A stretch of DNA of 64,000 bases. It comes from Ruditapes philippinarum (taxonomy: Eukaryota). The notes under the pieces are model-generated. The model did no database searches, was not told where the DNA came from, and was given only the letters and a program-made list of their open reading frames with translations. Location: the NCBI RefSeq assembly GCF_026571515.1, contig NW_026854858.1, positions 1-64,000 of the forward strand, written 5' to 3'. Shown piece by piece: positions 7,658 to 27,355 of this stretch. Within the stretch, counting starts at the first letter, position 1; each line of letters starts with the position of its first letter. The position numbers were made by a program, and so were the translations under genes.

Positions 7658-8089
7658 TTAACATGATATTTGTAATCTGTCACACATAACATAACACAGG
7701 CACATTATTTTTATCACATATCAGCTTCATCTCCGCTGTGGTCAGGTTTGGTACAACTTTTCGGACATTATCTTTTGGACAACATAAGTCACGTGTGATC
7801 CGCAGGCAATTTTCTGTTTATGTCCAGTTTAGTGTTATTTGTAAATTTGTTAAAGATAAAATCAGATGTATCTTTAATGCGTCCGTTATCTGGGTCTGCA
7901 TCAAATACTATCTTTCACACTTACCTGACCACTACCATGTCCTCAAGGCTTTGAATGAATATATCCGAAACAATCCGAATATATTTAGTCAGAGGTTGAC
8001 TGCATTACATCTACATAAGGTTGACGACTCGCTGTTGTTTTAAAGAACAAAAATAAAACAGTAAAAAAGCAACAACTTTAAATTTCAGC

Positions 8090-8155
8090 ATGGATTTTCG
8101 AGTATTACAATTGCTCATTTTCATCGGATTATTTAACTGCATTTTAGCGTCTAAG
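8090..8155 (+). CDS. BRICHOS gene exon 1 (signal peptide)
   Basis: ATG at 8090, hydrophobic MDFRVLQLLIFIGLFNCILASK, consensus donor AAG|GTAAGT at 8156. Confidence 0.75.
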
Positions 8156-11100
8156 GTAAGTTTATACTCTCTTGATGATATATTATACATTGTATATATA
8201 TGAAAATATGATCCAAACCTAGTCAGCGGGATCAGAAGACAGGCATTGTTTATTGTAAATATTTAAAGATATTCTATGCTTAAACTTGATTCAATTGTTA
8301 CATTTTTCTTTGTAAAAATAAAATAGCATGTTTTGACTTCACACAAAGTAAATAAGTTATGTTTAAATTTATACACACTATAGGTGGCCATAATATGACT
8401 ATATAGTGTCATTAAAAAAAAACTGGCAGTTTTTGTAGTTCTTTTTTTAACGAAAAGACCTGTAAAAGGAAAAGCAGTTACATACATGTAGTTTATTTAT
8501 TCTTTTATTCAAATTAGGCATAATTATAAAGTATGAATTTGATTGATTTCAATAAATTTGTGATTAAAATATTTTACTCAAGGATGACCAAAGTATATCA
8601 GCAGCGCTTATATCTGTAAATAAAAAAAAATAAACACTAGCATTTCTATATCAGTGAAAACCAATGTCCTTTTCTGCTATAATGCACTGACAGCTATAGT
8701 ATAATGCTCCGATATATGGATCAAAGCTTAAATAAATTATAAAGAAAAATATTCCATTTTTTGTCATTTTTTTATTTTTTGATAGAATGATTATATTTTA
8801 TCGAAGATATTAAGTAATAAAGGGACATACAAATTATACTTTAGACAAAAACAGAATCAGAAAGAATACATAGTTTGAAGAAGAAAAATCGTTTACAAAA
8901 AGGGCTACCTCTATATAAAATATAACGTGTGTTATATATACTTATATATTATATAAAGATTACTTACGTTATTTTTCCAGTAAAGCTATGTGCATTAAGA
9001 TGTCATATCTTATTCAGGTTTATGAGTGGCAGAATAATTGGGGTTCAGGCTTGTCGACTAAGGAGTTTGCTCAAATTCATGAACTTGACAAAACTATAAC
9101 CCACTATGCAACAGATGAAAGCGCCTCGGCAAAAAGTTCCCCGGCTGTCAGCCTTTATGATCTTAACACGCGAGAAGATGATTTTAAAAAGGTACGTAAA
9201 ATTATAGAAAATATTTTTCATTTGTTTCTGTCTTTGATTTTTTTTTATTTTATAAGTATCATCGACAATGTAAAGGTCATATGAAGACTTCCATGATTTA
9301 CTTCTGAACTAAGATTTTACTTTCTCTTTTGTGCATTAATTTAGCAATGTTGAAAAATGTTTTACCAGGTAGAATGTTAAATCTACGGACAGTTGGTAAC
9401 GTCATTAAACATAGCATACGTTTGACGATAATTATATGTTTTTGGTTTTGGGTGATATAATGTGGATAGTATTACATATATCTTGGCAGGTAATATATCC
9501 ACATATATCACTGCAAAACCAAAATAATAATTTATTACCCTTCCCCTGCCGAGGTTTTAGAAGATTTTTTTAAAAAAATCATTGCTGTTTCAAATGAAAC
9601 GTTGAAATAAGATTCCCTTTAGGGTACCTCTTCATCACAACATTGACGTCACGCATAAAACCATGACGTATTTTTCCGTACCTAACGAATGTAACCAGAG
9701 AAAAAGGAGTTAGTCTATTGAAAGCACTTTTTTGTAATTAATATCGCTTTACATGGTCATATTGTTTTCGAATACTGATGGGAATTTGTATCATTCTCTA
9801 CTTTGGTAAATATTTATCATTTGGACAGTTAAAAAGTGCTTGTAAATCGGAATTTACACCGCGTAAAATCGAACCGTACGCGCATCACCTCAGCGCATGT
9901 TGTTTACAACGTTGGGTACCCAACAGGGAAATTTAAGGTGTATATTACCCGTCTGGCTCGGTTATATCAATATCTTTCGGGTGATCAATATCCAATCAAA
10001 AAGGCGGAAAAAATCTGGAAGGGTAATAAAATTACATGTATACCGGTACCACTGCTTAAGATATTACCAAAAATGATTCCCCGATTCCTAAAAACATTTA
10101 GAGTCAACAAGCAAGCCGGCCAAACATGATCATATAGAAAATATTTAATAATGTGGCTAGTTTGTGCCATGTTGTATTTTCGCTCCAGGGGCGACAGGCG
10201 AAAACACAAAAATAAGACAACCACCACTCTTTCGAACTTTCGTCCAGCGGAGGGCAAGGCAAAATCACAAAAATACGACCGAGCCTCAATTGCTCACCCC
10301 GCATAGCGAAAGTACGATAAAATGTTATTATAATATCGTATATTCGTGTTTTTGTCCGGTGACCCACGGAGCAAAAATACAAGTTTGCACAAATCATCTA
10401 CCAAAGAAATATGAGAGTTTAGATCATTAAGGACACCGCCGTTCATGTTACGTGTTCCCTAAAAATCTGATCATTTAATACGAAGTGTTATAAATAGCTA
10501 TGAAAATTACAGGGAGTGAGGATGAATTTATTTGGGAACGCGGGGGCTGAAGGGTAATAAAAGGGATTAGAAATATTTACAATTTAAACGAAGGAAACAC
10601 GACACAAAAACACAAAACATTTACACGTTGACAAGACAGTCAGTAGTAATTGTCTCTTGTCGTATCTCAAGTTCTTTTTTTACAAAATTCCAAAAATGCA
10701 TATTTATAGAGAATGTTTCGATAACAAATATGCATGTTTAAATACCGGTATTACACCCAACAACGTATTATTCTGTACACTTTTTAATATATTTATTCTT
10801 ATTGAAACGGTACAGTTTGATAAGTTTCGACGAAGGCAACTTAGAGCAATGCACTTAAGATTTATTCTCTCACATCTCACAACTCGTGTACTAAAATGAC
10901 ACGAAGACGTCTTAATTCGGCCGTTCGGTTTGCTCAGTAGGAAGAGCGTTGTCCAGGCTGTGAATCGAGTGACCCAGGTTCGATTCCCGGACGGAGCATG
11001 ACACTTTCTTTGTGATTGATCATAAAATCCGTTCTACGGTCATTCGCACTGTACCTCTGTTCTGGCATGTACAGAAGTAATCGTTTCCTTGCAAAAGTGA

Positions 11101-14070
11101 AGGCAATTAGTACTCAGTCTAGTAACTGATTGACAAACGGTGGCTAAACTGTGTTTGGTAAATTCAGAGTGGCTTACTGCCAAAACCACCACACTAACCA
11201 TGTCTTAATTCATCACCATTTACAGTACATGTTGTGTTGTTTTTCACATAAAAAATGAAGAGTTTTTTTGTTGCTTTTAATAGTATATTACATTTCTGTT
11301 CTATATTTCAGGGAATAGTTGCTATTAGACCACTTGTGGCAAAAGGCAGTCAAGTCTGTTTCATTTCACAAGTGGTAAAATACTGGCCTGGAACAGAAAA
11401 AGCTGTAACTAACCGGCATGGGGTATGATATTTTGTGCTTATATTATTCATTATAAGTTTGATAAGTAAATTATATAGTAAACACTAAACTATTATTCAC
11501 TCTAAGTTTGATAAGTAAATTGTATAGTTAACACTCCAAAAAATATTTTAGAATGTCCTTAATCTAGTTCAAGAGTTTTAATCGATCATGGGCGTCGTGA
11601 TAAGACACCTGTTTTAATTGGTTTGAAAAGGTTTCAAGCAGTTTTAAGAATCGACCTATAAGAACCGGCTGCCGTTACAGATTGGAATATCTAGCTCGAT
11701 GGTAAGTGTAAGCTAAACAGTTACTCGAGAGCTAAAGATATTCCCGTCTATACCGACAGACGATGTTTGAATCTTTTTCTTGCATATTATCACCGTGTAT
11801 ATCCAGTAACGCAGGAATGTGTAAATGACGCTGTGTGCTAAAGTAACGCATAATTGTGCAATTTAGTGGCTAAAACGAGCAACGCGATAAGTAAATGGAT
11901 CAATATTATTATGGTGCGCCAAATTGGAAGAAATGAATTAGCGCATACATTTGCTGAGACATTTTACTTTGAACCTCATTAAAAATATTTCCATGAAAAT
12001 GTTTATTTTTCAAGATCATTCGTATCTATGTATCTATAAATACAATAACGTAGACTACATATTACTTTATGATTTTTTTTTGTATTCGGTGTACCTGAGA
12101 CATTTTCCAATCTACTCGTATCATATTACACAAAAATTAGCAGATAAAACGTAATTTAGACCATTTTTACGAGGTAACGCCGAATGAAGCACTGAAGTAA
12201 CGGCGGTTATCTACCAAAGACCGGTAGGGACATTTCAACTTCATAAATTTCCGATTTCATCTTCGTGAATTCACGATTTCAACTTCACGAACTTACGATT
12301 TCTACTTCATTAATCGTGAATTCGTAAAGTTGAAATCGTGAATTCGTGAAGTTGAAATCGTGAATTCACGAAGTTAAATTCGTGAAGTTGAAATCGTGAA
12401 TTCGTCAAGTTAATCGTGAATTCATGAAGTTGAAATAGTGAATTGATGAAGGTGAAATCGTGAATTCATGAAGCTGAAATCGTGAACTCCGTATGTTGAA
12501 AACGTGAATTTTCACGAAGTTAAAATTGTGAATTCGCAGGGATGAAATCGGAAAGTTGAAATGTCCCCACCGGTCTTTCGTAGTTATCTCTAAAAGTAGC
12601 TATATCCTATTTTACTAGCTTCCTTCTATTGTTATACGGCACTTCTAGTTTGACAAAATATCTAACGGTATACAGAATATGAAAAAAAATAAAGTTTTAA
12701 ATGTGTTTTAATTAAATGTACATATTTATTTGACGAAACAGAAAGGTCACCTTCAAAACGGTAATCAGGTTGTCTTTCTCACGAATGATCTAAAGTAGTA
12801 AACACATTCCTGAAAAAAATTGTCATGCTGGTTAAAGTATAATGTCGTAGCAGCCGTATGCGCTAATTCATTTCTTTAAATTTTATATAGAATAAAATAT
12901 TTTGGTTCGTATACTTACTGTGTTATTCGTTTTGGCAATAGCGTTGCACAGATGCGGTGTTACTTTTACGTTAATTGCACATTCCTGCGTTACTGGATAT
13001 GCACGGTGACTCCTGTCTAATTGAACTTCACCAAGTTGAGTCTTAATGTTACTTTTTATATTAAAAGAAAATTCTTACAAATTTTGATTTAAAAATTTCT
13101 TGATTGTGCGCGAGGGATAATATCAAAATGATCAAGATGTTAAAGTATCCCACACCGAGGTATTCAAATTCGTTGTCATAATTCAACCTAAGGGACGATT
13201 CACTTGCTTCTTTATTTTTCAAAGTAATAATATTTTAAATGATGTTTATCCATTTACCGCTTTCTTTACGCATACATTTAATTTCTTTCCTTTACAGACC
13301 ACAATAAATGCACCGAAATCAACAAATTACTACAAAGTAAAGAAGGTATTCCCGTCAAACCTTGACCCTCTTTCTATACAAAGTATAGCTGACTTCTGTA
13401 ACGTAGATTCGGACCATATATTCTACATGGATCCCATTGAAAATGGTAAGACCTAGCTTGAAGATAAGTATAATAGATAAAGGACTTTTAAATGCTGATA
13501 AGGTGTCAATCAGCCATATGTTGCAGGATATATAATTCCACTAACTAAGTAATTCACTAAATGTTTATCTTCAAGAATTATATTTGTGCTATAACGATAT
13601 CTAAATATACCGTTATGCATAAAAACATAATAAATTTCAGATCATTCGTTTTTCCAGAATAATTATTTAAATTGTAAAAACAATGAAAATCATTTAAACG
13701 CTTGTCAGTCAATCGGGCTATGAAATGCATAAACATACGATTTTTAATTTATTTCAAAGTATATGTCTTTACCATCTTTGCATATATTTCTGTTTAAAGT
13801 GCCCTAGCTCAAGTATGTAAGGTATTCAAATGTTATATTTTTAGGCTTTTAAACATCGGTGGAGTCCCTTTAAACCATTTGTTTAGTAGGGAATAGTGTG
13901 CAGCGTGTTGAAATTGTATTTACCTTACGTTCAAGCACATTGCTTATACGTTACATAATTATTTATTTTCAGTGAAAGGTTACAAACAGAAGTTGAAGAT
14001 CCATGGACTCTTTGGACGCTTGGTTGTTGGTATTCCGGATAAACACATTGATACAGTATTTGGTAATTGA
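8090..14070 (+). CDS. Secreted BRICHOS-domain protein (5 exons, 198 aa) with cationic C-terminal peptide
   Basis: Hand-spliced exons 8090-8155, 9018-9191, 11312-11422, 13298-13445, 13973-14070. All introns are GT-AG with consistent phases (0,0,0,1); 597 nt open to TGA. Protein: MDFRVLQLLIFIGLFNCILASK|VYEWQNNWGSGLSTKEFAQIHELDKTITHYATDESASAKSSPAVSLYDLNTREDDFKK|GIVAIRPLVAKGSQVCFISQVVKYWPGTEKAVTNRHG|TTINAPKSTNYYKVKKVFPSNLDPLSIQSIADFCNVDSDHIFYMDPIEN|VKGYKQKLKIHGLFGRLVVGIPDKHIDTVFGN. It has a signal-peptide-like N-terminus and the BRICHOS pattern DFKKGIVAIR...CFI...IADFC..HIFYM with exactly two Cys in the mature part (domain call by pattern recognition). AATAAA signals follow the stop. Confidence 0.82.
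9018..9191 (+). CDS. BRICHOS gene exon 2
   Basis: Acceptor tcttattcag|GTT, donor AAG|gtacgt; 58 codons, in frame with track ORF 8988-9284. Confidence 0.8.
9430..10565. repeat. Palindrome-bearing non-autonomous element(s) in intron 2 (Crypton-like, tentative)
   Basis: Hairpin 9439-9524; TTTATTACCCTTC (9531) is inverted relative to GAAGGGTAATAAA at 10018 and 10548; second inverted pair ~10172-10207 / 10347-10380. Confidence 0.45.
10919..11201 (+). mobile_element. tRNA-derived SINE (MetaSINE-like) in intron 2
   Basis: A-box TTGCTCAGTAGG, B-box GGTTCGATTCC, central GATTGATCATAAAATCCGTTCTACGGTCATTC resembling the Meta domain, AC-rich tail; 10-bp TSD GTCTTAATTC at 10909-18 and 11202-11. Confidence 0.8.
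11312..11422 (+). CDS. BRICHOS gene exon 3 (first conserved Cys)
   Basis: Acceptor ctatatttcag|GGA, donor GGG|gtatga; GIVAIRPLVAKGSQVCFISQVV... Confidence 0.8.
11791..13008. mobile_element. Larger non-autonomous DNA element with long imperfect inverted repeats (host of the 12211 MITE)
   Basis: CACCGTGTATATCCAGTAACGCAGGAATGTG (11791) vs inverted copy ending 13008; inner pair AAGAAATGAATTAGCGCATAC (~11928) vs GTATGCGCTAATTCATTTCTT (~12856). No clear TSD. Confidence 0.65.
12211..12583. mobile_element. MITE with 29-bp TIRs and internal ~21-bp minisatellite
   Basis: TIRs CTACCAAAGACCGGTAGGGACATTTCAAC / CTACGAAAGACCGGTGGGGACATTTCAAC (27/29 match); 4-bp TSD TTAT; interior (TCGTGAATTCGTGAAGTTGAAA)-like tandem units. 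Confidence 0.85.
13298..13445 (+). CDS. BRICHOS gene exon 4 (second conserved Cys)
   Basis: Acceptor ttctttcctttacag|ACC, donor G|gtaag; ...SIADFCNVDSDHIFYMDP... Confidence 0.8.
13615..13872. repeat. Dispersed repeat (TTAA-ended DNA element remnant) in intron 4, also at ~3060-3350
   Basis: AGATCATTC...TTTTCCAGAATAAT...GGAGTCCCT|TTAA is shared with 3062-3351 (...GGATCTCCT|TTAA). Confidence 0.55.
13973..14070 (+). CDS. BRICHOS gene exon 5 (C-terminal cationic peptide, stop)
   Basis: Acceptor tttattttcag|TG, phase 1 matches the exon 4 donor; reads VKGYKQKLKIHGLFGRLVVGIPDKHIDTVFGN*. Confidence 0.75.
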
Positions 14071-16500
14071 AAAATCAAATAAAAAAATATACACATTATA
14101 TAGATTGATATTTCAAACGTGATTTTTCATACGAATATTGTTTTAACCAAATAAATTCTAAAACGAGTTAATGCCAATAAAAGATTGATATATTTAAAAG
14201 GTGAAATTGTTTCTTTCTTATTAATCATCTGGAAATTAGGTATATATGATTATTTTTCTATATACTAAGAGTTCTTTATATAGAACATATTCAAATTTCA
14301 GGATGTACAGGCTGCTGAGATTGAAATCTTATGTTGCGAATTTTTGGAATTTCAGGATAAAGATTGAAAACGAAAGTCTTGCGAGAGTTCTATGTACATA
14401 ATAAAACTTGACTAATTTTTATTTCATTTCTTTCTTAGGTTTTCTTCGTCAAAATGCTTCGGATTTTTTAAGAAATTTTTACTGTAAGTGAAGGTTGCAG
14501 AGTAAAATGTTAGATTAATTCTAATGTATTTTATTTTCAGCAGTCATATAATGAATCAACATATAAATGTCATACTGAAGTGAGGATAGCCTCATATAAT
14601 AATTATTTGTGTTATTGCATGTTTTACATATGTGTTTAAACACACCACTGAATAGCCTTTTCCCTTATTATTTTTTACAATGTGTATGTTTGTTGAAGCT
14701 TATTACTACATTTGGCACACTGTTTTTGCACGTTAAATACTATATTAGAATTATTCCGTTTCAAATCACTGATTTTTTAGGTTTGATTGTTAAAATTGTA
14801 TTGTTATTGTATAGTTTTGATATTGTATACCAGATATATGTTAACGTGTATAATGATTCATATTGCACTGTTAAGAAATTTATATTGCATACATTGCTCA
14901 GCGTTACAGTTTGATATTACACGGTTATAAAGACTTATAGCACGACGCTTATTGACCATTCTATATTGATGTTATAATGTTTACTGAACGGTTATTTCTT
15001 AGAGCTAAAATTATTTTCTATATAATTAACTATAATTTATATGTTTAAATACGGGCGTGCCCTGCTTTTATTGTAATTTTCTTTGATCACCATTTCCTTT
15101 ATTTTGCGTAACGTGTGGTCGTATAACTGACACTTCTTTGTTTTTGTTGATGTACTAAAATAATTTAGAAATCTGTTTGATTTTTTTAAATAATATAGTT
15201 GATATTATATATTGTTGCTGTTTTAAGCAAAACGCATTTGATTTTTTTAAGGTTTTAGTAAAGAAAATGAAATAAAAATTATTTGTCTTCTTCTTTATTT
15301 GACTCCATGCATAGACGTTTAATACATAACATATATAACAATATTGTGTTAATGTAAAATACATATTTATTAACCTTCGCCGTCGTCTACTTTAAAGGAA
15401 AACATTGCCCATGTAGATGACTAAGTTAGAAAATTAAAACATCTATATCTTTAAAAAAAAGTCAGTATGTTTTAAAGATATTTTATCCTTTATAAAATAA
15501 ATTTGATAGCATTTCTGACCCCTAATCGTCCTTTAATGTTAAATAATGGATAATTATGACGTAATATCACTGATAAAAGCCTCTTTTTCTGTAGCAAAGT
15601 AATTTTTGACACGAAGTAAAGATAACTTACAATAACATTGGTTATAAAAGTCAGGCTCGTAAAAGTTTATATTTGATTTGCCATGGTCATTTCAATATAC
15701 AATGTAAAATTTCAAGGTAACTTACGGCATCTTTAGATCAGAATTATCTCCTTTGACACAAATAGTTACGCAGAAGTCGTAAAAGTTTTCACATAGTCAA
15801 CAGTGATAATGATTCCTATATTGTACTATCAATGAAGTCAGGAGGTAAATAAAACAAAGATATTTTCTTGCTTGTGTCTCTGCATTCTAGGTCACTAACA
15901 CCTTGTTGTTTTTTTAATTCACATAGTATATCTACGTTGCAACTCTATACTAGCTACATGTTGTCCCCATTTAAAATACTTTTGTATAATGGTAAAACAG
16001 GAATAAAGATACAATTTCATGATAATTTAGAATAAAAGTATAACGACTTTCAAGCTCACAAATAGAAAAAGCGGCAATAAAACAATTCTAATTAATACAA
16101 CGTAAATAGAAAATCGTTTCCCACAATCAACTAGCTTTTTTGTACTTCACACTGAAAAAAAATAAATCAAAGGCCCTTTATGCCTAAGAAGTGCTATCAT
16201 AACTTCCCAAAATGTGTTTATGTTTTGGTACTTGTTACAATTTCAAAAATATACTAATTTGCTAAATACCTGAACTATCTTATACATCTTTTGCATTGTT
16301 AACAATAAGTATAATTTAAGTAAATAAGTATTTTGTATGGAAGTCAAATACTACTTTGTTTACATTCTGCTACCTTTACGATACATAAATAGAGCTTACC
16401 TTATCAAACACATGTTTGACATTTCTAACGAATATAAAATATGGATTTCTGAGGCATAATATGTATATAACGAAAAGGTGACCCTTTTAAACGGGATATC

Positions 16501-19850: not shown

Positions 19851-19994
19851 TGTCACAGGGTGAGAAAAATGTGCAGCCTGACCAGGACTCGAACCCGGGA
19901 TTTTCGGAATACCGTTCCGCGGCTCTAACGACTGAGCTATCCGGCCGCTTACACATCTTCTCCCCTAATTAGTGAACAGTTCTGAACCGTGACA
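19851..19994 (-). mobile_element. 144-bp solo LTR containing a tRNA-like sequence (Helenus-type TRIM)
   Basis: TGTCAC...GTGACA termini; 4-bp TSD TTTC (19847-50 / 19995-98). Minus strand carries A-box TAGCTCAGTCG and B-box GGTTCGAGTCC. No SINE tail. Confidence 0.7.
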
Positions 19995-23215: not shown

Positions 23216-24395
23216 CTGCTGTTACAACTAATAATACAATATCCTTAACATTTTGCTTGTTCACCGATAAGGTATTGATGTTATCCAAGCGTAAGGTAAA
23301 CCGATTCTATTTATATCTGTAAATCCGGGTCATTTTATCGCTTTACTTACTGATACTATACACGCTTGTCAATTTCTCAAGGTGACACGGGATCATTATT
23401 TATTTGTCTGCTCACGTTTGTTTATTGTCCATAATTGGCAGACATAAGGTTACACAATAAAGGCTGTGTATGTACTAATTATGATAACACCTTGTTTGTA
23501 CCATTCCATGTCATTCCATTTATTATCTACATTTGTAAACGTAACAGTGACTTATACCAACGCACGTCCCTTTGTTTACATTAGAAACGGCATCATAATG
23601 TAAATATATCGAATAAAATATGGTTAAACCAAACGGCGAATACGTATAGTTTTCACTCGCGTGTTAAAGTATATTTAGATCGATCGCAAAGAGAATAATT
23701 TTATCTTATTTTATCTTATGTACGCAATAACAAAATCAAATGATTTTCATATGTTTTTAAACATAACAAAATATAAAAAGGAAAAAAAAATAATATAAAC
23801 ATTACAACAAAATAACAAAAACAAAACCGTTAAAAGTGTGGCGAGTGTATGTGGTGGAATTATAAAATTCAGGTTTTTTAGGTAATTAAAACATAATGAA
23901 TTAAATATACTGAGTGCATAGTACAATATCAATTTTTCACCTGAAACATTAAACAATGTTTATAACAAATAAACAATATGAGCAAATACAAGTCTTGTTC
24001 AATGGATATACGCAGCATCGGCAAGGGAGAGAACTGTGTTCCACATATTCATATTCTGTAAAAAGAAATTAAACCCCCTTGACCGATTTGTTAATGAAGT
24101 TGGTTTTATAAAATGATTTAATCTAATATTAAACATGATATTACAGTCTACAAGTTGCTGTATTTCTATATATCATTTTCCAACCCATGAAAACTGCATA
24201 CTGTTAACATAGCGCAAAAAAGATAAAAAAAAAACAACAACAAGAACTACGATGTATCATTACAAAAAGATACTCGACCAAAGTAAAACCGGTTACATTG
24301 CATATGTTAGTTATTTGTTTTCCATATACATGTATGTGTGTCTAAACAAACCTGTCGTGTTTCGGTACGTAAAATCAATTTTACGCAATCAGTAA

Positions 24396-27355
24396 TGCGG
24401 CGTTCACACAGTGCCGATTACGGCTCCCGTTGGAGATCAGACAGCGCTACGACACGAAAAGCAAAAAAGTCGGATAACTATCCTCATTGATCTGGAATGT
24501 CCTATCATTGTCTAAACGCAGTCGTATATGTTCGTAACAGAGTCCTACGGATCGGGACTGGTCCGCAGAGGTCTGCCAAGCACTCCCGACAGTTAGGTGC
24601 GTCCCGTAATATTCGGGAAACACAGCCGATTTTGTCTAGTCGGATCATAATCGTGACTAGTCGGATTACAATCGTGACTATGTCGTGACAGATTCTGCTG
24701 TATCGGATCAAAATCGTAACAATGTCATGTGTTGTCTGGTCAGTGTCCGGTGGAACGGGCATGACCTGGAGAAATTTTGCATTGTCGTTTCTTGTTCATT
24801 GAGTCCAGATTCATCCAGATCTTGCCGAATGCGAACCGTCTTTGCCGAATCCGTTCCGGAAATGTTCAGTAATTAATACGAAATTCGGCAATAATACCCA
24901 CGTCAGAGTCACGACAATTACAGAACACGATACGACTGAGTCCAGACAAAGGCATGTGCAATGCGGTACAGCAGACTGTAATAGGATTGCGTTCCGGCAG
25001 TGTCCCGATCATCCTGAATATGGCGACAGTTGTAGGATTCCAGATGCGCGGATGACCAGATTCGGCTGAGCTGCTCACGTATGGAGTATATATATAACAT
25101 GTGTTTGTGTGTGTGTGTCATTCATTGACAGTACTTTGACCGGTCCACCATGAATGTTGTTCGTAGACGGAGACTTCTGCAGCAGGTTGCTCTCATGGAA
25201 ACGGTAGAAAAAGAAGATACTGGGTCATACCTGGATATACAGAAGGGAGCAGCTCGGCCAGTATGGCACATTGATGAGGGAGCTGAGAGAAGAAGATCCA
25301 TAAGCTTTCATCAACTACATGAGGCTGCCTATGGAACTATACGATGAAGTCCTGGCTCGGATCACACCCCGCATCACCAAACAAGATACCTGGTGGAGGC
25401 AAGCCCTTGATCCAGGACTGAAGTTTGCCTGTACCATGTGGCATCTGGCATCCGGTGACAGTTACAGCAGCATAAAGTGGGACTTCAGGGTTCCCAGTAA
25501 CACCATGTCAATGTTTGTCCCTGAAGTCTGCCAAGCTATCATTGATGAGTACGCTGCAGAGGTAATCGCCTGCTCCACTTCCCCAGCGGAGTGGAAAGAA
25601 ATCGCAAATGAATTTCTCCGCAGATGGAACTTCCCACATGTGGTGTGTGCGGTGCATTGGACGGAAAGCACGTTGCGTGCAAGTGCCCACTAAATACCGG
25701 ATCTACCTACCATAACTATGATGGCTTCTTCTCCGTAGTCCCGATGACCCTCGTAGATGCGGACTATAAATTTATTTGGCTTGATGTTGGGCCAGATGGA
25801 GCAGCTTCAGACGCACAAATATACAACGAGTGTGAGCTGAAAGAAGTCCTCCAGAACAAGACCATTGGCTTTCCTGATCATGAGCCACTTCCTAGAGATG
25901 CGAAATATGCCATACTTCTTTGTTTCTGAAAATGCCTTTCAACTGAGAACTGACTTGATGAAGCCTTTTTCCCTTTCCGTAACTGAAAGTAGAAGAAAGG
26001 ATCTTTAACTACAGGCTGTCAAGAGCACGCAGAGTTGTGGAAAATGCGTTTGGCATCTTGGCTCAGAGATTTCAAATACAGTTGTCAACCATGCAACACA
26101 CTCCTGACAATGTGAGAATCATCTTACAGGCTTGTGTCTCTTTCAACAACTTAATGAGAATACGCTACCCAAACATGAACATCAACCAGGTTGATCGTGA
26201 AGATGTCGAGGACGTAAGGATCGTACCCGGAGAATGGAGACTGGGCCGAAACATGTTTGACGTTGTCAATGTTCAGAGTGCTAACCGTGCAACAATACAG
26301 GGCAAAAAAGCAGAGACAATATCTCAAACATTATCTTAACTCTGCCGCTGGATCTGTACCTTGGCAGATGAGGATTGTCAACCCTCGCCGTGAAGGAAGA
26401 CCATATAATAAAATGACAGAACTCTGTGCTATTATTTGTCACATCTTGTATGTATCATTGGCTTTTAAATATAACAGCGGAGTTTAAGCTGTGGCATTAC
26501 TTGTGTAGCAAAATAAAATATTGTTTAATGTTAATTGAAATCTATTTTATTTATGAAAGTGTTAACTCCTAGTTTGGACTAATTTATAATTTAAGGCCAC
26601 TTGTTTGGCAAAAGGTTAAAGTTAAAATTTAATAGGTTTAATAAAGTTTAAAAGATAAAATTTCATACAATAATAAACAAGAAAACACAATATATTTTTT
26701 TATCTTGAACAATGTTTATGTCTGATCAATATGTTATAACATTCAATAATAAGAGGTAACATTTTTTCTGTAATCTTAACACAGATTATTTCAAATCTTA
26801 CAAATGTTCTGCAATCATTATACAGATAATAGAGATTACTTTTGAATTATACAAGTTTGCTGTACTATAAATACAGCATATTAGCAAGCAGTTTAAAAAT
26901 TAAATTCATAATTAAAATTAGACAAGTTGAAATTCTTATAGGACGGGACCATCACGGGACTATCACGTGAAACGGTTTTCTAACGGATGTCTTCCGTCAG
27001 AGTCGGTTCATTGTCTCGTGACTGTCTGATCTCTGTCGGATCGCATTCGGGAGTATCGGGACGCTGCCGGGACAGAATCGATCGTTCTTAACCATGACAA
27101 AGATACAAATCGGATCAGATTTGGATTGAGAACGGGATAATCGGGACGAATTCTGCTGGAAACGGTTGGACCGGGAAGCCTATTGAACAATATCTGATTG
27201 TTATCGTGATTAAATAAATGTTTTTTATAAATTTTGATAAAAGTTTGAATTTCCAGTCACGAATCACAGGATCTTGATCAGACTTTTGACACATTTTAAT
27301 CGGGAATGGTCCTATCAAGGACGGCAGTAAAAATTATGAATGTGTGACTTAGGCA
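24396..27355 (+). mobile_element. PIF/Harbinger DNA transposon, defective
   Basis: TAA at 24393-95 and 27356-58 (the typical Harbinger TSD). Imperfect TIRs TGCGGCGTTCACACA / TGCCTAAGTCACACA (reverse complement of right end). GC-richer subterminal regions with ATCGTGAC/TCGGATC motifs; internal DDE transposase remnants. Confidence 0.85.
25150..26400 (+). pseudogene. Harbinger (HARBI1-like, DDE_Tnp_4) transposase pseudogene, multiple frameshifts
   Basis: Motifs spread over several frames: YMRLPMELYDEVL, WHLASGDSYSSI, RWNFPH, CGALDGKHV, YHNYDGFFSVV...VDADYKFIWLDVG, SDAQIY, FNYRLSRARRVVENAFGILAQRF. Confidence 0.9.

Follow-up and report, generated by a model that had tools for sequence, protein, structure and literature searches.

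Gastrokines are secreted whole by the mucosal epithelium, with their C-terminal segment attached. BRICHOS pro-proteins in general have a convertase site (PMC9714404), and in the known BRICHOS precursors of antimicrobial peptides (AMPs) a Lys/Arg-Arg site stands before the peptide, as described in published work; according to a review, such BRICHOS-AMPs are known from polychaetes only. The extended form of the domain consists, in order, of strands 1′, 2′, 1, 2 (with a conserved Asp), 3 and 4 (with a Cys), helix 1, strand 4′, a short helix 2 (with the second Cys) and strand 5 (PMC9714404). The only solved BRICHOS structure, that of proSP-C, is without three strands of the extended domain, and published AlphaFold models of most human BRICHOS proteins place the C-terminal segment on the sheet of the domain. 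A BRICHOS-domain transcript has also been noted in mussel digestive gland. Here we describe a five-exon gene on the + strand, at positions 8090–14070 of a 64,000-nucleotide (nt) stretch of the clam Ruditapes philippinarum (positions 1 to 64,000 of contig NW_026854858.1, assembly GCF_026571515.1; this whole stretch is called the window). The gene is spliced, present in several copies and under purifying selection. It encodes a protein with a secretion-type N-terminus and two cysteines, which probably belongs to a divergent and so far unrecognised branch of the BRICHOS proteins. The account that we favour, with somewhat better than an even chance of being right in all its parts, is that of a divergent gastrokine-like BRICHOS protein that is secreted and retains its tail.

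A sequence-only reading of the window had proposed a complete five-exon gene at this position, encoding a signal peptide, a two-Cys domain of BRICHOS pattern and a Cys-free cationic tail, and had taken its source to be a mollusc, which R. philippinarum indeed is. The stretch 8000–14200 is free of N runs. When a script joined the exon ranges of the window, the exons, the GT..AG introns and the 198-amino acid (aa) protein were reproduced exactly: the joined sequence comprises 597 nt, or 198 codons with one terminal stop, and all four introns are GT..AG with a polypyrimidine acceptor. The features of the gene are as follows (X1 and X2 are sequencing runs).

Reaching upstream of 8080, + strand: 5′ untranslated region of exon 1; an X1 contig extends beyond 8080
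8090..8155, + strand: coding part of exon 1, 22 aa (MDFRVLQLLIFIGLFNCILASK), with the start codon and a signal-peptide-like N-terminus, from translation
8156..9017, + strand: intron 1, 862 nt, phase 0, with its GT..AG joint in X1 and X2
9018..9191, + strand: exon 2, 58 aa, residues 23–80, from translation and with joints on both sides
9192..11311, + strand: intron 2, 2120 nt, phase 0, expanded by repeats, with a GT..AG joint
11312..11422, + strand: exon 3, 37 aa, residues 81–117 (GIVAIRPL...QVCFIS), with the invariant Cys96 (11357–11359)
11423..13297, + strand: intron 3, 1875 nt, phase 0, with a nested inverted-repeat and 22-nt tandem-repeat element and a GT..AG joint
13298..13445, + strand: exon 4, 49 aa plus 1 nt, residues 118–166, with the invariant Cys151 (13397–13399) in DFCNVDSDHIFYM
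13446..13972, + strand: intron 4, 527 nt, phase 1, which puts the tail on a separate exon; joint depth 708–1452 in X1 and X2
13973..14070, + strand: exon 5, 31 aa plus the stop codon, carrying the tail VKGYKQKLKIHGLFGRLVVGIPDKHIDTVFGN, whose first codon is split with exon 4
14078..14083, + strand: candidate AATAAA polyadenylation signal, 8 nt past the stop codon, read from the sequence

The secretion-type N-terminus foreseen in the sequence-only reading was borne out. Residues 5–20 form a hydrophobic core (mean Kyte-Doolittle value of 2.45), the 22-aa N-terminus ends in ILA-SK, and the mature part has no equally strong hydrophobic stretch (highest 19-residue mean, 1.2), so that we infer a signal peptide. 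The mature protein contains exactly two cysteines, Cys96 and Cys151, and the tail is the Cys-free cationic segment of 32 residues that had been described; its net charge is +4 and its isoelectric point (pI) 10.0, and it lies on an exon of its own behind a phase-1 intron. RefSeq models of the family, among them the isoforms or paralogues P0003 and P0004, differ in how they end after ...TVFG, where a GN-stop, a G-stop (isoform X2) and a GCTGC-stop are found; in the window, a gtaat follows the last Gly codon (14062–14070) and is a possible alternative donor.

The gene is spliced as predicted. Junctions were sought in Logan contigs and reads of runs X1, X2, X5 and X21 placed on 8080–14079, and all four expected joints (8155>9018, 9191>11312, 11422>13298, and 13445>13973) were found, exactly at the predicted positions, in contigs of both X1 and X2, with a word depth of 254–1452, which goes well beyond coincidence. 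In these two runs the exon bins are deep, while unique intron bins (e.g., 8680–8879 and 13080–13279) are at or near zero. The status of X1 and X2 as RNA is a tool's guess and not a recorded fact; it is likely to be right because their contigs lack the introns and the introns are empty. Run X5 gave no exon cover and no junctions of the gene across 8080–14079, and X21, the sole run recorded as RNA (raw reads, of which ~4% were read), gave thin exon cover and none of the listed joints. In a run search with 13298–14200, the runs that were found contained 0.30–0.43 of the words, roughly the exonic share of that stretch. Expression is therefore uneven: strong in one 2015 study and weak or absent in other runs. 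In exons 2 and 4, every one of the five listed variants is at a third codon position; the variants of exon 1 also affect first and second positions.

The gene had been presented in the sequence-only reading as a candidate new precursor. Its novelty needs correction: the family is already in RefSeq as “uncharacterized protein”, with no function assigned, and this is not an unannotated gene. The exon 2 frame (8919–9281, of which only the exon part scored) matches the 200-aa R. philippinarum “uncharacterized protein LOC132722087”, whose 90% cluster comprises five loci. The window protein is 94–97.5% identical to its RefSeq paralogues in R. philippinarum and identical to none of them; residues 23–196 of P0004 are the same as in the window protein. 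No paper on this clam family was found in the literature, and a broader look for BRICHOS in clams or oysters gave nothing relevant. In the genome (1.41 Gb in 15,874 contigs), exon 2 occurs six times, each time on a different contig and with 97–100% protein identity; three of the gene copies are complete and three are cut by contig ends (exon 4 copies, n = 3). Besides the window, the copies lie on contigs C3224, C11907, C7574, C15216, and C5420, and they may be tandem paralogues or uncollapsed divergent haplotypes, both of which are possible. Four of the copies translate exactly to RefSeq proteins P0002, P0005, P0006, and P0007, and when P0004 is counted there are at least seven near-identical loci. 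A search of the genome with a family profile for divergent paralogues returned the same near-identical loci only.

Comparison of the copies shows that the family is under purifying selection. In exon 2, the window differs from C11907 and C15216 by 0 nonsynonymous and 6–7 synonymous changes (35 synonymous sites), and all pairs of copies differ by 0–2 nonsynonymous versus 0–7 synonymous changes. A few nonsynonymous changes separate the copies in exons 3 and 4. All complete paralogues have the same tail (0 nonsynonymous vs. 0–3 synonymous changes; 0 and 3, respectively, between the window and C15216). The most variable part among the paralogues is the signal peptide. Intron lengths vary widely across copies: intron 4 measures 527 nt in the window and ~4.25 kb on C15216, and intron 2 is ~1.27–1.6 kb long in the other copies.

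Relatives were sought in three ways: by words with P0006, by HMMER with a profile run exhaustively against 1.84 billion representatives, and by words once more with a wider profile. These searches identified an orthologue in Mercenaria mercenaria (P0008, 63% identity), one in Mactra antiquata (P0010, 43% identity, domain only), and one in Dreissena polymorpha (P0011, 35% identity, with a 77-aa extension after VFGN), together with a few unnamed exon-sized fragments. Neither the word searches nor the HMMER search of 1.84 billion proteins found a named relative outside the heterodont bivalves, and a third word search with the family profile added no further relatives. Judged from these matches, the multi-copy family is specific to heterodont bivalves. 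In the Dreissena orthologue (P0011/P0017) the 77 residues by which the frame runs past the conserved VFGN end are mostly hydrophobic; they represent either a new C-terminus, acquired through loss of the stop codon, or an annotation read-through.

The assignment to BRICHOS, which had been made from the pattern of the domain, is probable but not established. Whole-protein searches were run with the near-identical paralogues P0006 and P0004 in place of the window protein, whose exons were searched singly. PF04089 was the sole Pfam family reported, with an E value of 0.013 (16.1 bits) for P0006 and 0.052 (14.2 bits) for P0004. Both matches are collinear, with residues 77–151 lying on profile positions 10–84 of 91; exon 3 falls within the matched stretch, which stops at 13399 within exon 4. 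Both also score below the curated (gathering) cut-off of the family, which is 25 bits. Since BRICHOS had been named beforehand, the relevant chance probability is that for a single model, or ~5e-7 (E 0.013 over 24,736 models). An independent language-model search with P0006 placed clusters of gastrokine-2 and gastrokine-1 nearest (score 0.92, with 200 of 256 features shared), and 17 of its 30 matches were BRICHOS clusters, those that are OAF-like and proSP-C-like ranking lower.

The conserved residues and the predicted structure point the same way. Three residues do not vary between the genera Ruditapes, Mercenaria, Mactra, and Dreissena: Cys96, Cys151, and Asp70 (9159–9161), the last of which is encoded in exon 2 along with the conserved strands of the N-terminal part (VYEWQNNWG...THYATDE). 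The family thus has one conserved Asp and two conserved Cys, as a BRICHOS domain does; that these residues correspond to the BRICHOS positions is taken from the range of the sub-threshold Pfam alignment. An AlphaFold model of the Mactra domain was of mediocre quality, with a predicted local distance difference test (pLDDT) score of 61.6 and a predicted template modelling (pTM) score of 0.53. It has strands at 2–11, 14–23, 28–35, 44–49 (which ends in the conserved Asp) and 61–63, followed by a bridge near the first Cys, a helix at 84–94, strands at 98–100 and 108–112, a helix at 126–130 that ends in the second Cys, and a strand at 138–142. In this model, the order of the elements fits the extended BRICHOS topology. 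The full-length AlphaFold model was unusable (pLDDT 39.9), and its Foldseek matches are meaningless.

Several results count against this assignment. Beyond the shortfall of P0006 and P0004 against the Pfam cut-off, five other members (P0002, P0003, P0008, P0010, and P0011) gave no Pfam match at E ≤ 10, the exon-by-exon Pfam scan was blank at the same limit, and a six-frame scan of the genome with PF04089 did not pick up the locus. The exhaustive profile search, which covered 1.84 billion proteins, did not lead to any known BRICHOS protein or gastrokine, and no BRICHOS chain turned up in the PDB sequence searches, whether a single protein or the family profile served as the query. The language-model neighbours of the Mercenaria orthologue P0008 were unrelated, and its Atlas model was poor. 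Finally, fold searches with the Mactra domain model, of the kind that the sequence-only reading had proposed as a check, matched no solved fold. This last result is weak evidence, because the model is mediocre and the proSP-C structure, the only one solved for BRICHOS, is without three strands of the extended domain.

Two observations from these scans stand apart. A designed TIM barrel in the PDB sequence searches was a spurious repeat match and was discarded. The six-frame PF04089 scan of the genome picked up two weak exons elsewhere, on C3026 and C2461; the better one (C3026:53861-53965, 23.4 bits, ...VIVDNEDQECFIMDLDRKQISPPKSFAELIRKY) contains a typical BRICHOS strand, ...ECFIMDLD..., and probably belongs to a canonical BRICHOS gene unrelated to the clam family.

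These results have to be weighed against the alternative that the protein is not a BRICHOS protein at all, and is instead a secreted two-Cys protein particular to its lineage, with a fold that is its own or of another kind, whose resemblance to BRICHOS arose by convergence or by chance in a small α/β domain. The low Pfam scores, with none for most of the family, the exhaustive profile search that ended among bivalves, the lack of a fold match and the language-model result that was not repeated on the Mercenaria protein are what such a protein would give. It would not readily explain why the one Pfam family that is reported is the one named in advance, seen twice, nearly full-length and collinear, why a language model independently arrives at BRICHOS clusters, or why the Asp and both Cys are invariant and the order of the secondary structure fits. 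We regard this alternative as unlikely, though it deserves to be kept in mind, and BRICHOS homology of the clam family as probable, with membership not demonstrated.

At the tail, the locus departs from what had been proposed, namely that a client peptide, perhaps an AMP, is released from the precursor. No RxxR occurs anywhere in the protein, and near the boundary of domain and tail (DPIEN-VKGYKQ) there is no KR, RR, or other dibasic pair; the sole dibasic pairs, KK at 79–80 and 132–133, both lie within the domain. The protein thus has no convertase site of the kind from which BRICHOS pro-proteins release a C-terminal peptide. The tail was also expected to evolve faster than the domain in bivalves. 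Besides being invariant among the paralogues, it is identical to the Mercenaria tail at 20 of 32 positions, compared with 39 of 58, 23 of 37, and 36 of 49 in exons 2, 3, and 4, and with the 63% of the protein as a whole, so by this alignment it is as conserved as the domain and does not evolve faster. Its charge is +7 in Mercenaria, whereas in the aligned segment of Dreissena (…GLFEEMRIYVPEELVSKVFGN) acidic residues outnumber basic ones; this segment retains the skeleton G.F…VP….VFGN. Neither the helical nor the strand hydrophobic moment of the tail exceeds that of shuffled sequences (a fraction of 0.14–0.65 of the shuffles equalled or surpassed the tail itself). Nor does the tail resemble the polychaete type of C-terminal peptide, which is cationic and usually a Cys-stapled β-hairpin. 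A complex prediction with the domain (23–166) and the tail (167–198) as separate chains gave scores of 0.66, 0.01, and 0.01, which are below the mark and are evidence neither way.

Bivalve AMP families typically conserve the signal peptide and vary in the mature peptide. The clam pattern, as read from the alignments, is the reverse, with a variable signal peptide and a conserved tail. Given the lack of a convertase site, the conserved sequence, the charge lost in Dreissena, and an amphipathicity no better than that of shuffles, release of the tail as an effector or AMP is not supported.

In the account that we favour, removal of the signal peptide would yield a secreted protein of ~19.8 kDa (residues 23–198). 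Its body, approximately residues 23–166, most likely represents an extended BRICHOS domain of gastrokine-like type that has diverged very far. This domain would comprise extra N-terminal strands, a strand that ends with Asp70, another that contains Cys96, and a short helix that ends with Cys151; Cys96 and Cys151 would form the single disulfide of the family. The 32-residue segment most likely corresponds to the usual short β-prone C-terminal region of BRICHOS proteins and stays covalently attached, where it might either pack on the sheet of the domain or act as a conserved interaction motif that ends in VFGN. The pattern would then be that of the gastrokines and not that of arenicin. A chaperone or mucosal role for such a protein is conceivable. 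What we infer thus begins beyond a secreted two-Cys protein under purifying selection.

The other way to accommodate a BRICHOS domain is a chaperoned precursor from which a protease other than a convertase cuts the tail, freeing a linear AMP or an amyloid-like or adhesive peptide. In its favour are the separate exon of the tail behind a phase-1 intron, the basic character of the tail in Veneridae, and a multi-copy gene whose very high expression in some samples and absence in others is typical of effector genes; BRICHOS proteins often free a C-terminal peptide, and the polychaete BRICHOS precursors free cationic AMPs. This proposal has to do without the Lys/Arg-Arg or RxxR site common to the known BRICHOS-AMP precursors and without a Cys to staple a hairpin, and it has to reconcile release with a tail that purifying selection holds invariant while the signal peptide varies, that loses its positive charge in Dreissena, and that is no more amphipathic than its shuffles. 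We consider it improbable. Slightly less probable still is a more specific form, a first BRICHOS-type precursor outside the annelids to release a disulfide-free linear cationic effector, which could be antimicrobial, membrane-active, or fibril-forming, through a protease that needs no dibasic site; in that case, the strict conservation of the tail would be due to a fixed target or to joint evolution with the chaperone domain, and not to lack of release.

The introns contain repeats of several kinds. In intron 3, an element resembling a miniature inverted-repeat transposable element (MITE) lies at 12208–12586, with 34-nt terminal inverted repeats (91% complementary). Between these repeats, a 22-nt unit is arrayed in both orientations, and a larger inverted repeat (11790–11830 / 12969–13009) encloses the whole element. 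Contigs of X2 and X5 skip 12212–12620 and have other letters between, and therefore other copies or alleles differ there. Very high depth was seen in every run, even in those without exon cover, at 9480–10079 and 10880–11079 in intron 2 and at 13480–13879 in intron 4, and strand-switch joints occur at 9479/9480 in intron 2. These high-depth stretches look like expressed or abundant repeats, such as insertions of the MITE type or of the type of short interspersed nuclear elements (SINEs). A tRNA gene in intron 2 was considered and rejected, as ARAGORN calls none in 8000–14200; the tRNA-like box sequence near 10905–11000 would more likely be the head of a SINE. Elsewhere in the window, a full-length Rfam tRNA match (44.7 bits) at 19874–19946 on the − strand is either a tRNA gene or a tRNA-derived repeat. 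Broken remnants of a PIF/Harbinger-type transposase lie at 25319–26339 on the + strand, in a GC-rich block (24001–26000, GC 0.44); there, an open reading frame at 25624–25926 matches DDE_Tnp_4 (E 1.4e-9), one at 26037–26336 weakly matches Plant_tran (E 0.004), and the frame is interrupted between them.

As the evidence stands, the locus is an ordinary lineage-specific gene for a secreted protein and not a demonstrated new peptide effector, and for clam biology it offers a candidate tissue- or condition-specific secreted marker. If the BRICHOS assignment is true, heterodont bivalves would have a highly expressed, multi-copy subfamily of gastrokine-like layout that standard domain annotation has missed, and the secreted layout of signal peptide, BRICHOS domain, and tail would be present in a mollusc besides vertebrates. 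The family would also serve as a natural experiment on the role of the short C-terminal segment of BRICHOS proteins where cleavage and disulfide stapling are both absent.

Among known systems, BRI2/ITM2B and OAF have strands 1′, 2′, and 4′, the conserved Asp, and a disulfide from helix 2 to strand 4, which fit the order of elements in the Mactra model. However, BRI2 is a type II membrane protein, whereas the signal peptide of the clam protein looks cleavable; and BRI2 and OAF have a convertase (furin) site and Cys in the released peptide, in contrast to the clam protein, which has no such site and no Cys in its tail.

The polychaete BRICHOS-AMP precursors (those of arenicin, alvinellacin, capitellacin, nicomicin, and the HfBRI peptides) are, like the clam protein, of lophotrochozoan origin, and they resemble it in having a hydrophobic region at the N-terminus, then a BRICHOS-type domain and, at the C-terminus, a cationic peptide that is about as long. 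They differ in their Lys/Arg-Arg site and in peptides that are mostly Cys-stapled β-hairpins, neither of which has a counterpart in the clam, and their peptides have diversified, whereas the clam tail is conserved.

With the gastrokines (GKN1/GKN2/GKN3) no link at the level of sequence was found: the profile search gives bivalve relatives only, and Pfam recognises BRICHOS in 99–100% of the members of the gastrokine clusters, compared with sub-threshold scores in the clam family. It is in architecture that the two agree. In both, a signal peptide leads straight into a domain of extended BRICHOS type, after which comes a C-terminal segment of ~30 residues; both total ~185–200 aa, and both have two Cys in the domain; the clam domain of ~145 aa and tail of ~32 aa resemble those of GKN2, in which the domain occupies residues 20–151. 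Gastrokine clusters are also the nearest language-model neighbours of the clam protein P0006, with no repeat for P0008. By layout, size, and language-model features, and not by demonstrable sequence homology, the closest known kind of protein is the secreted gastrokine subfamily.

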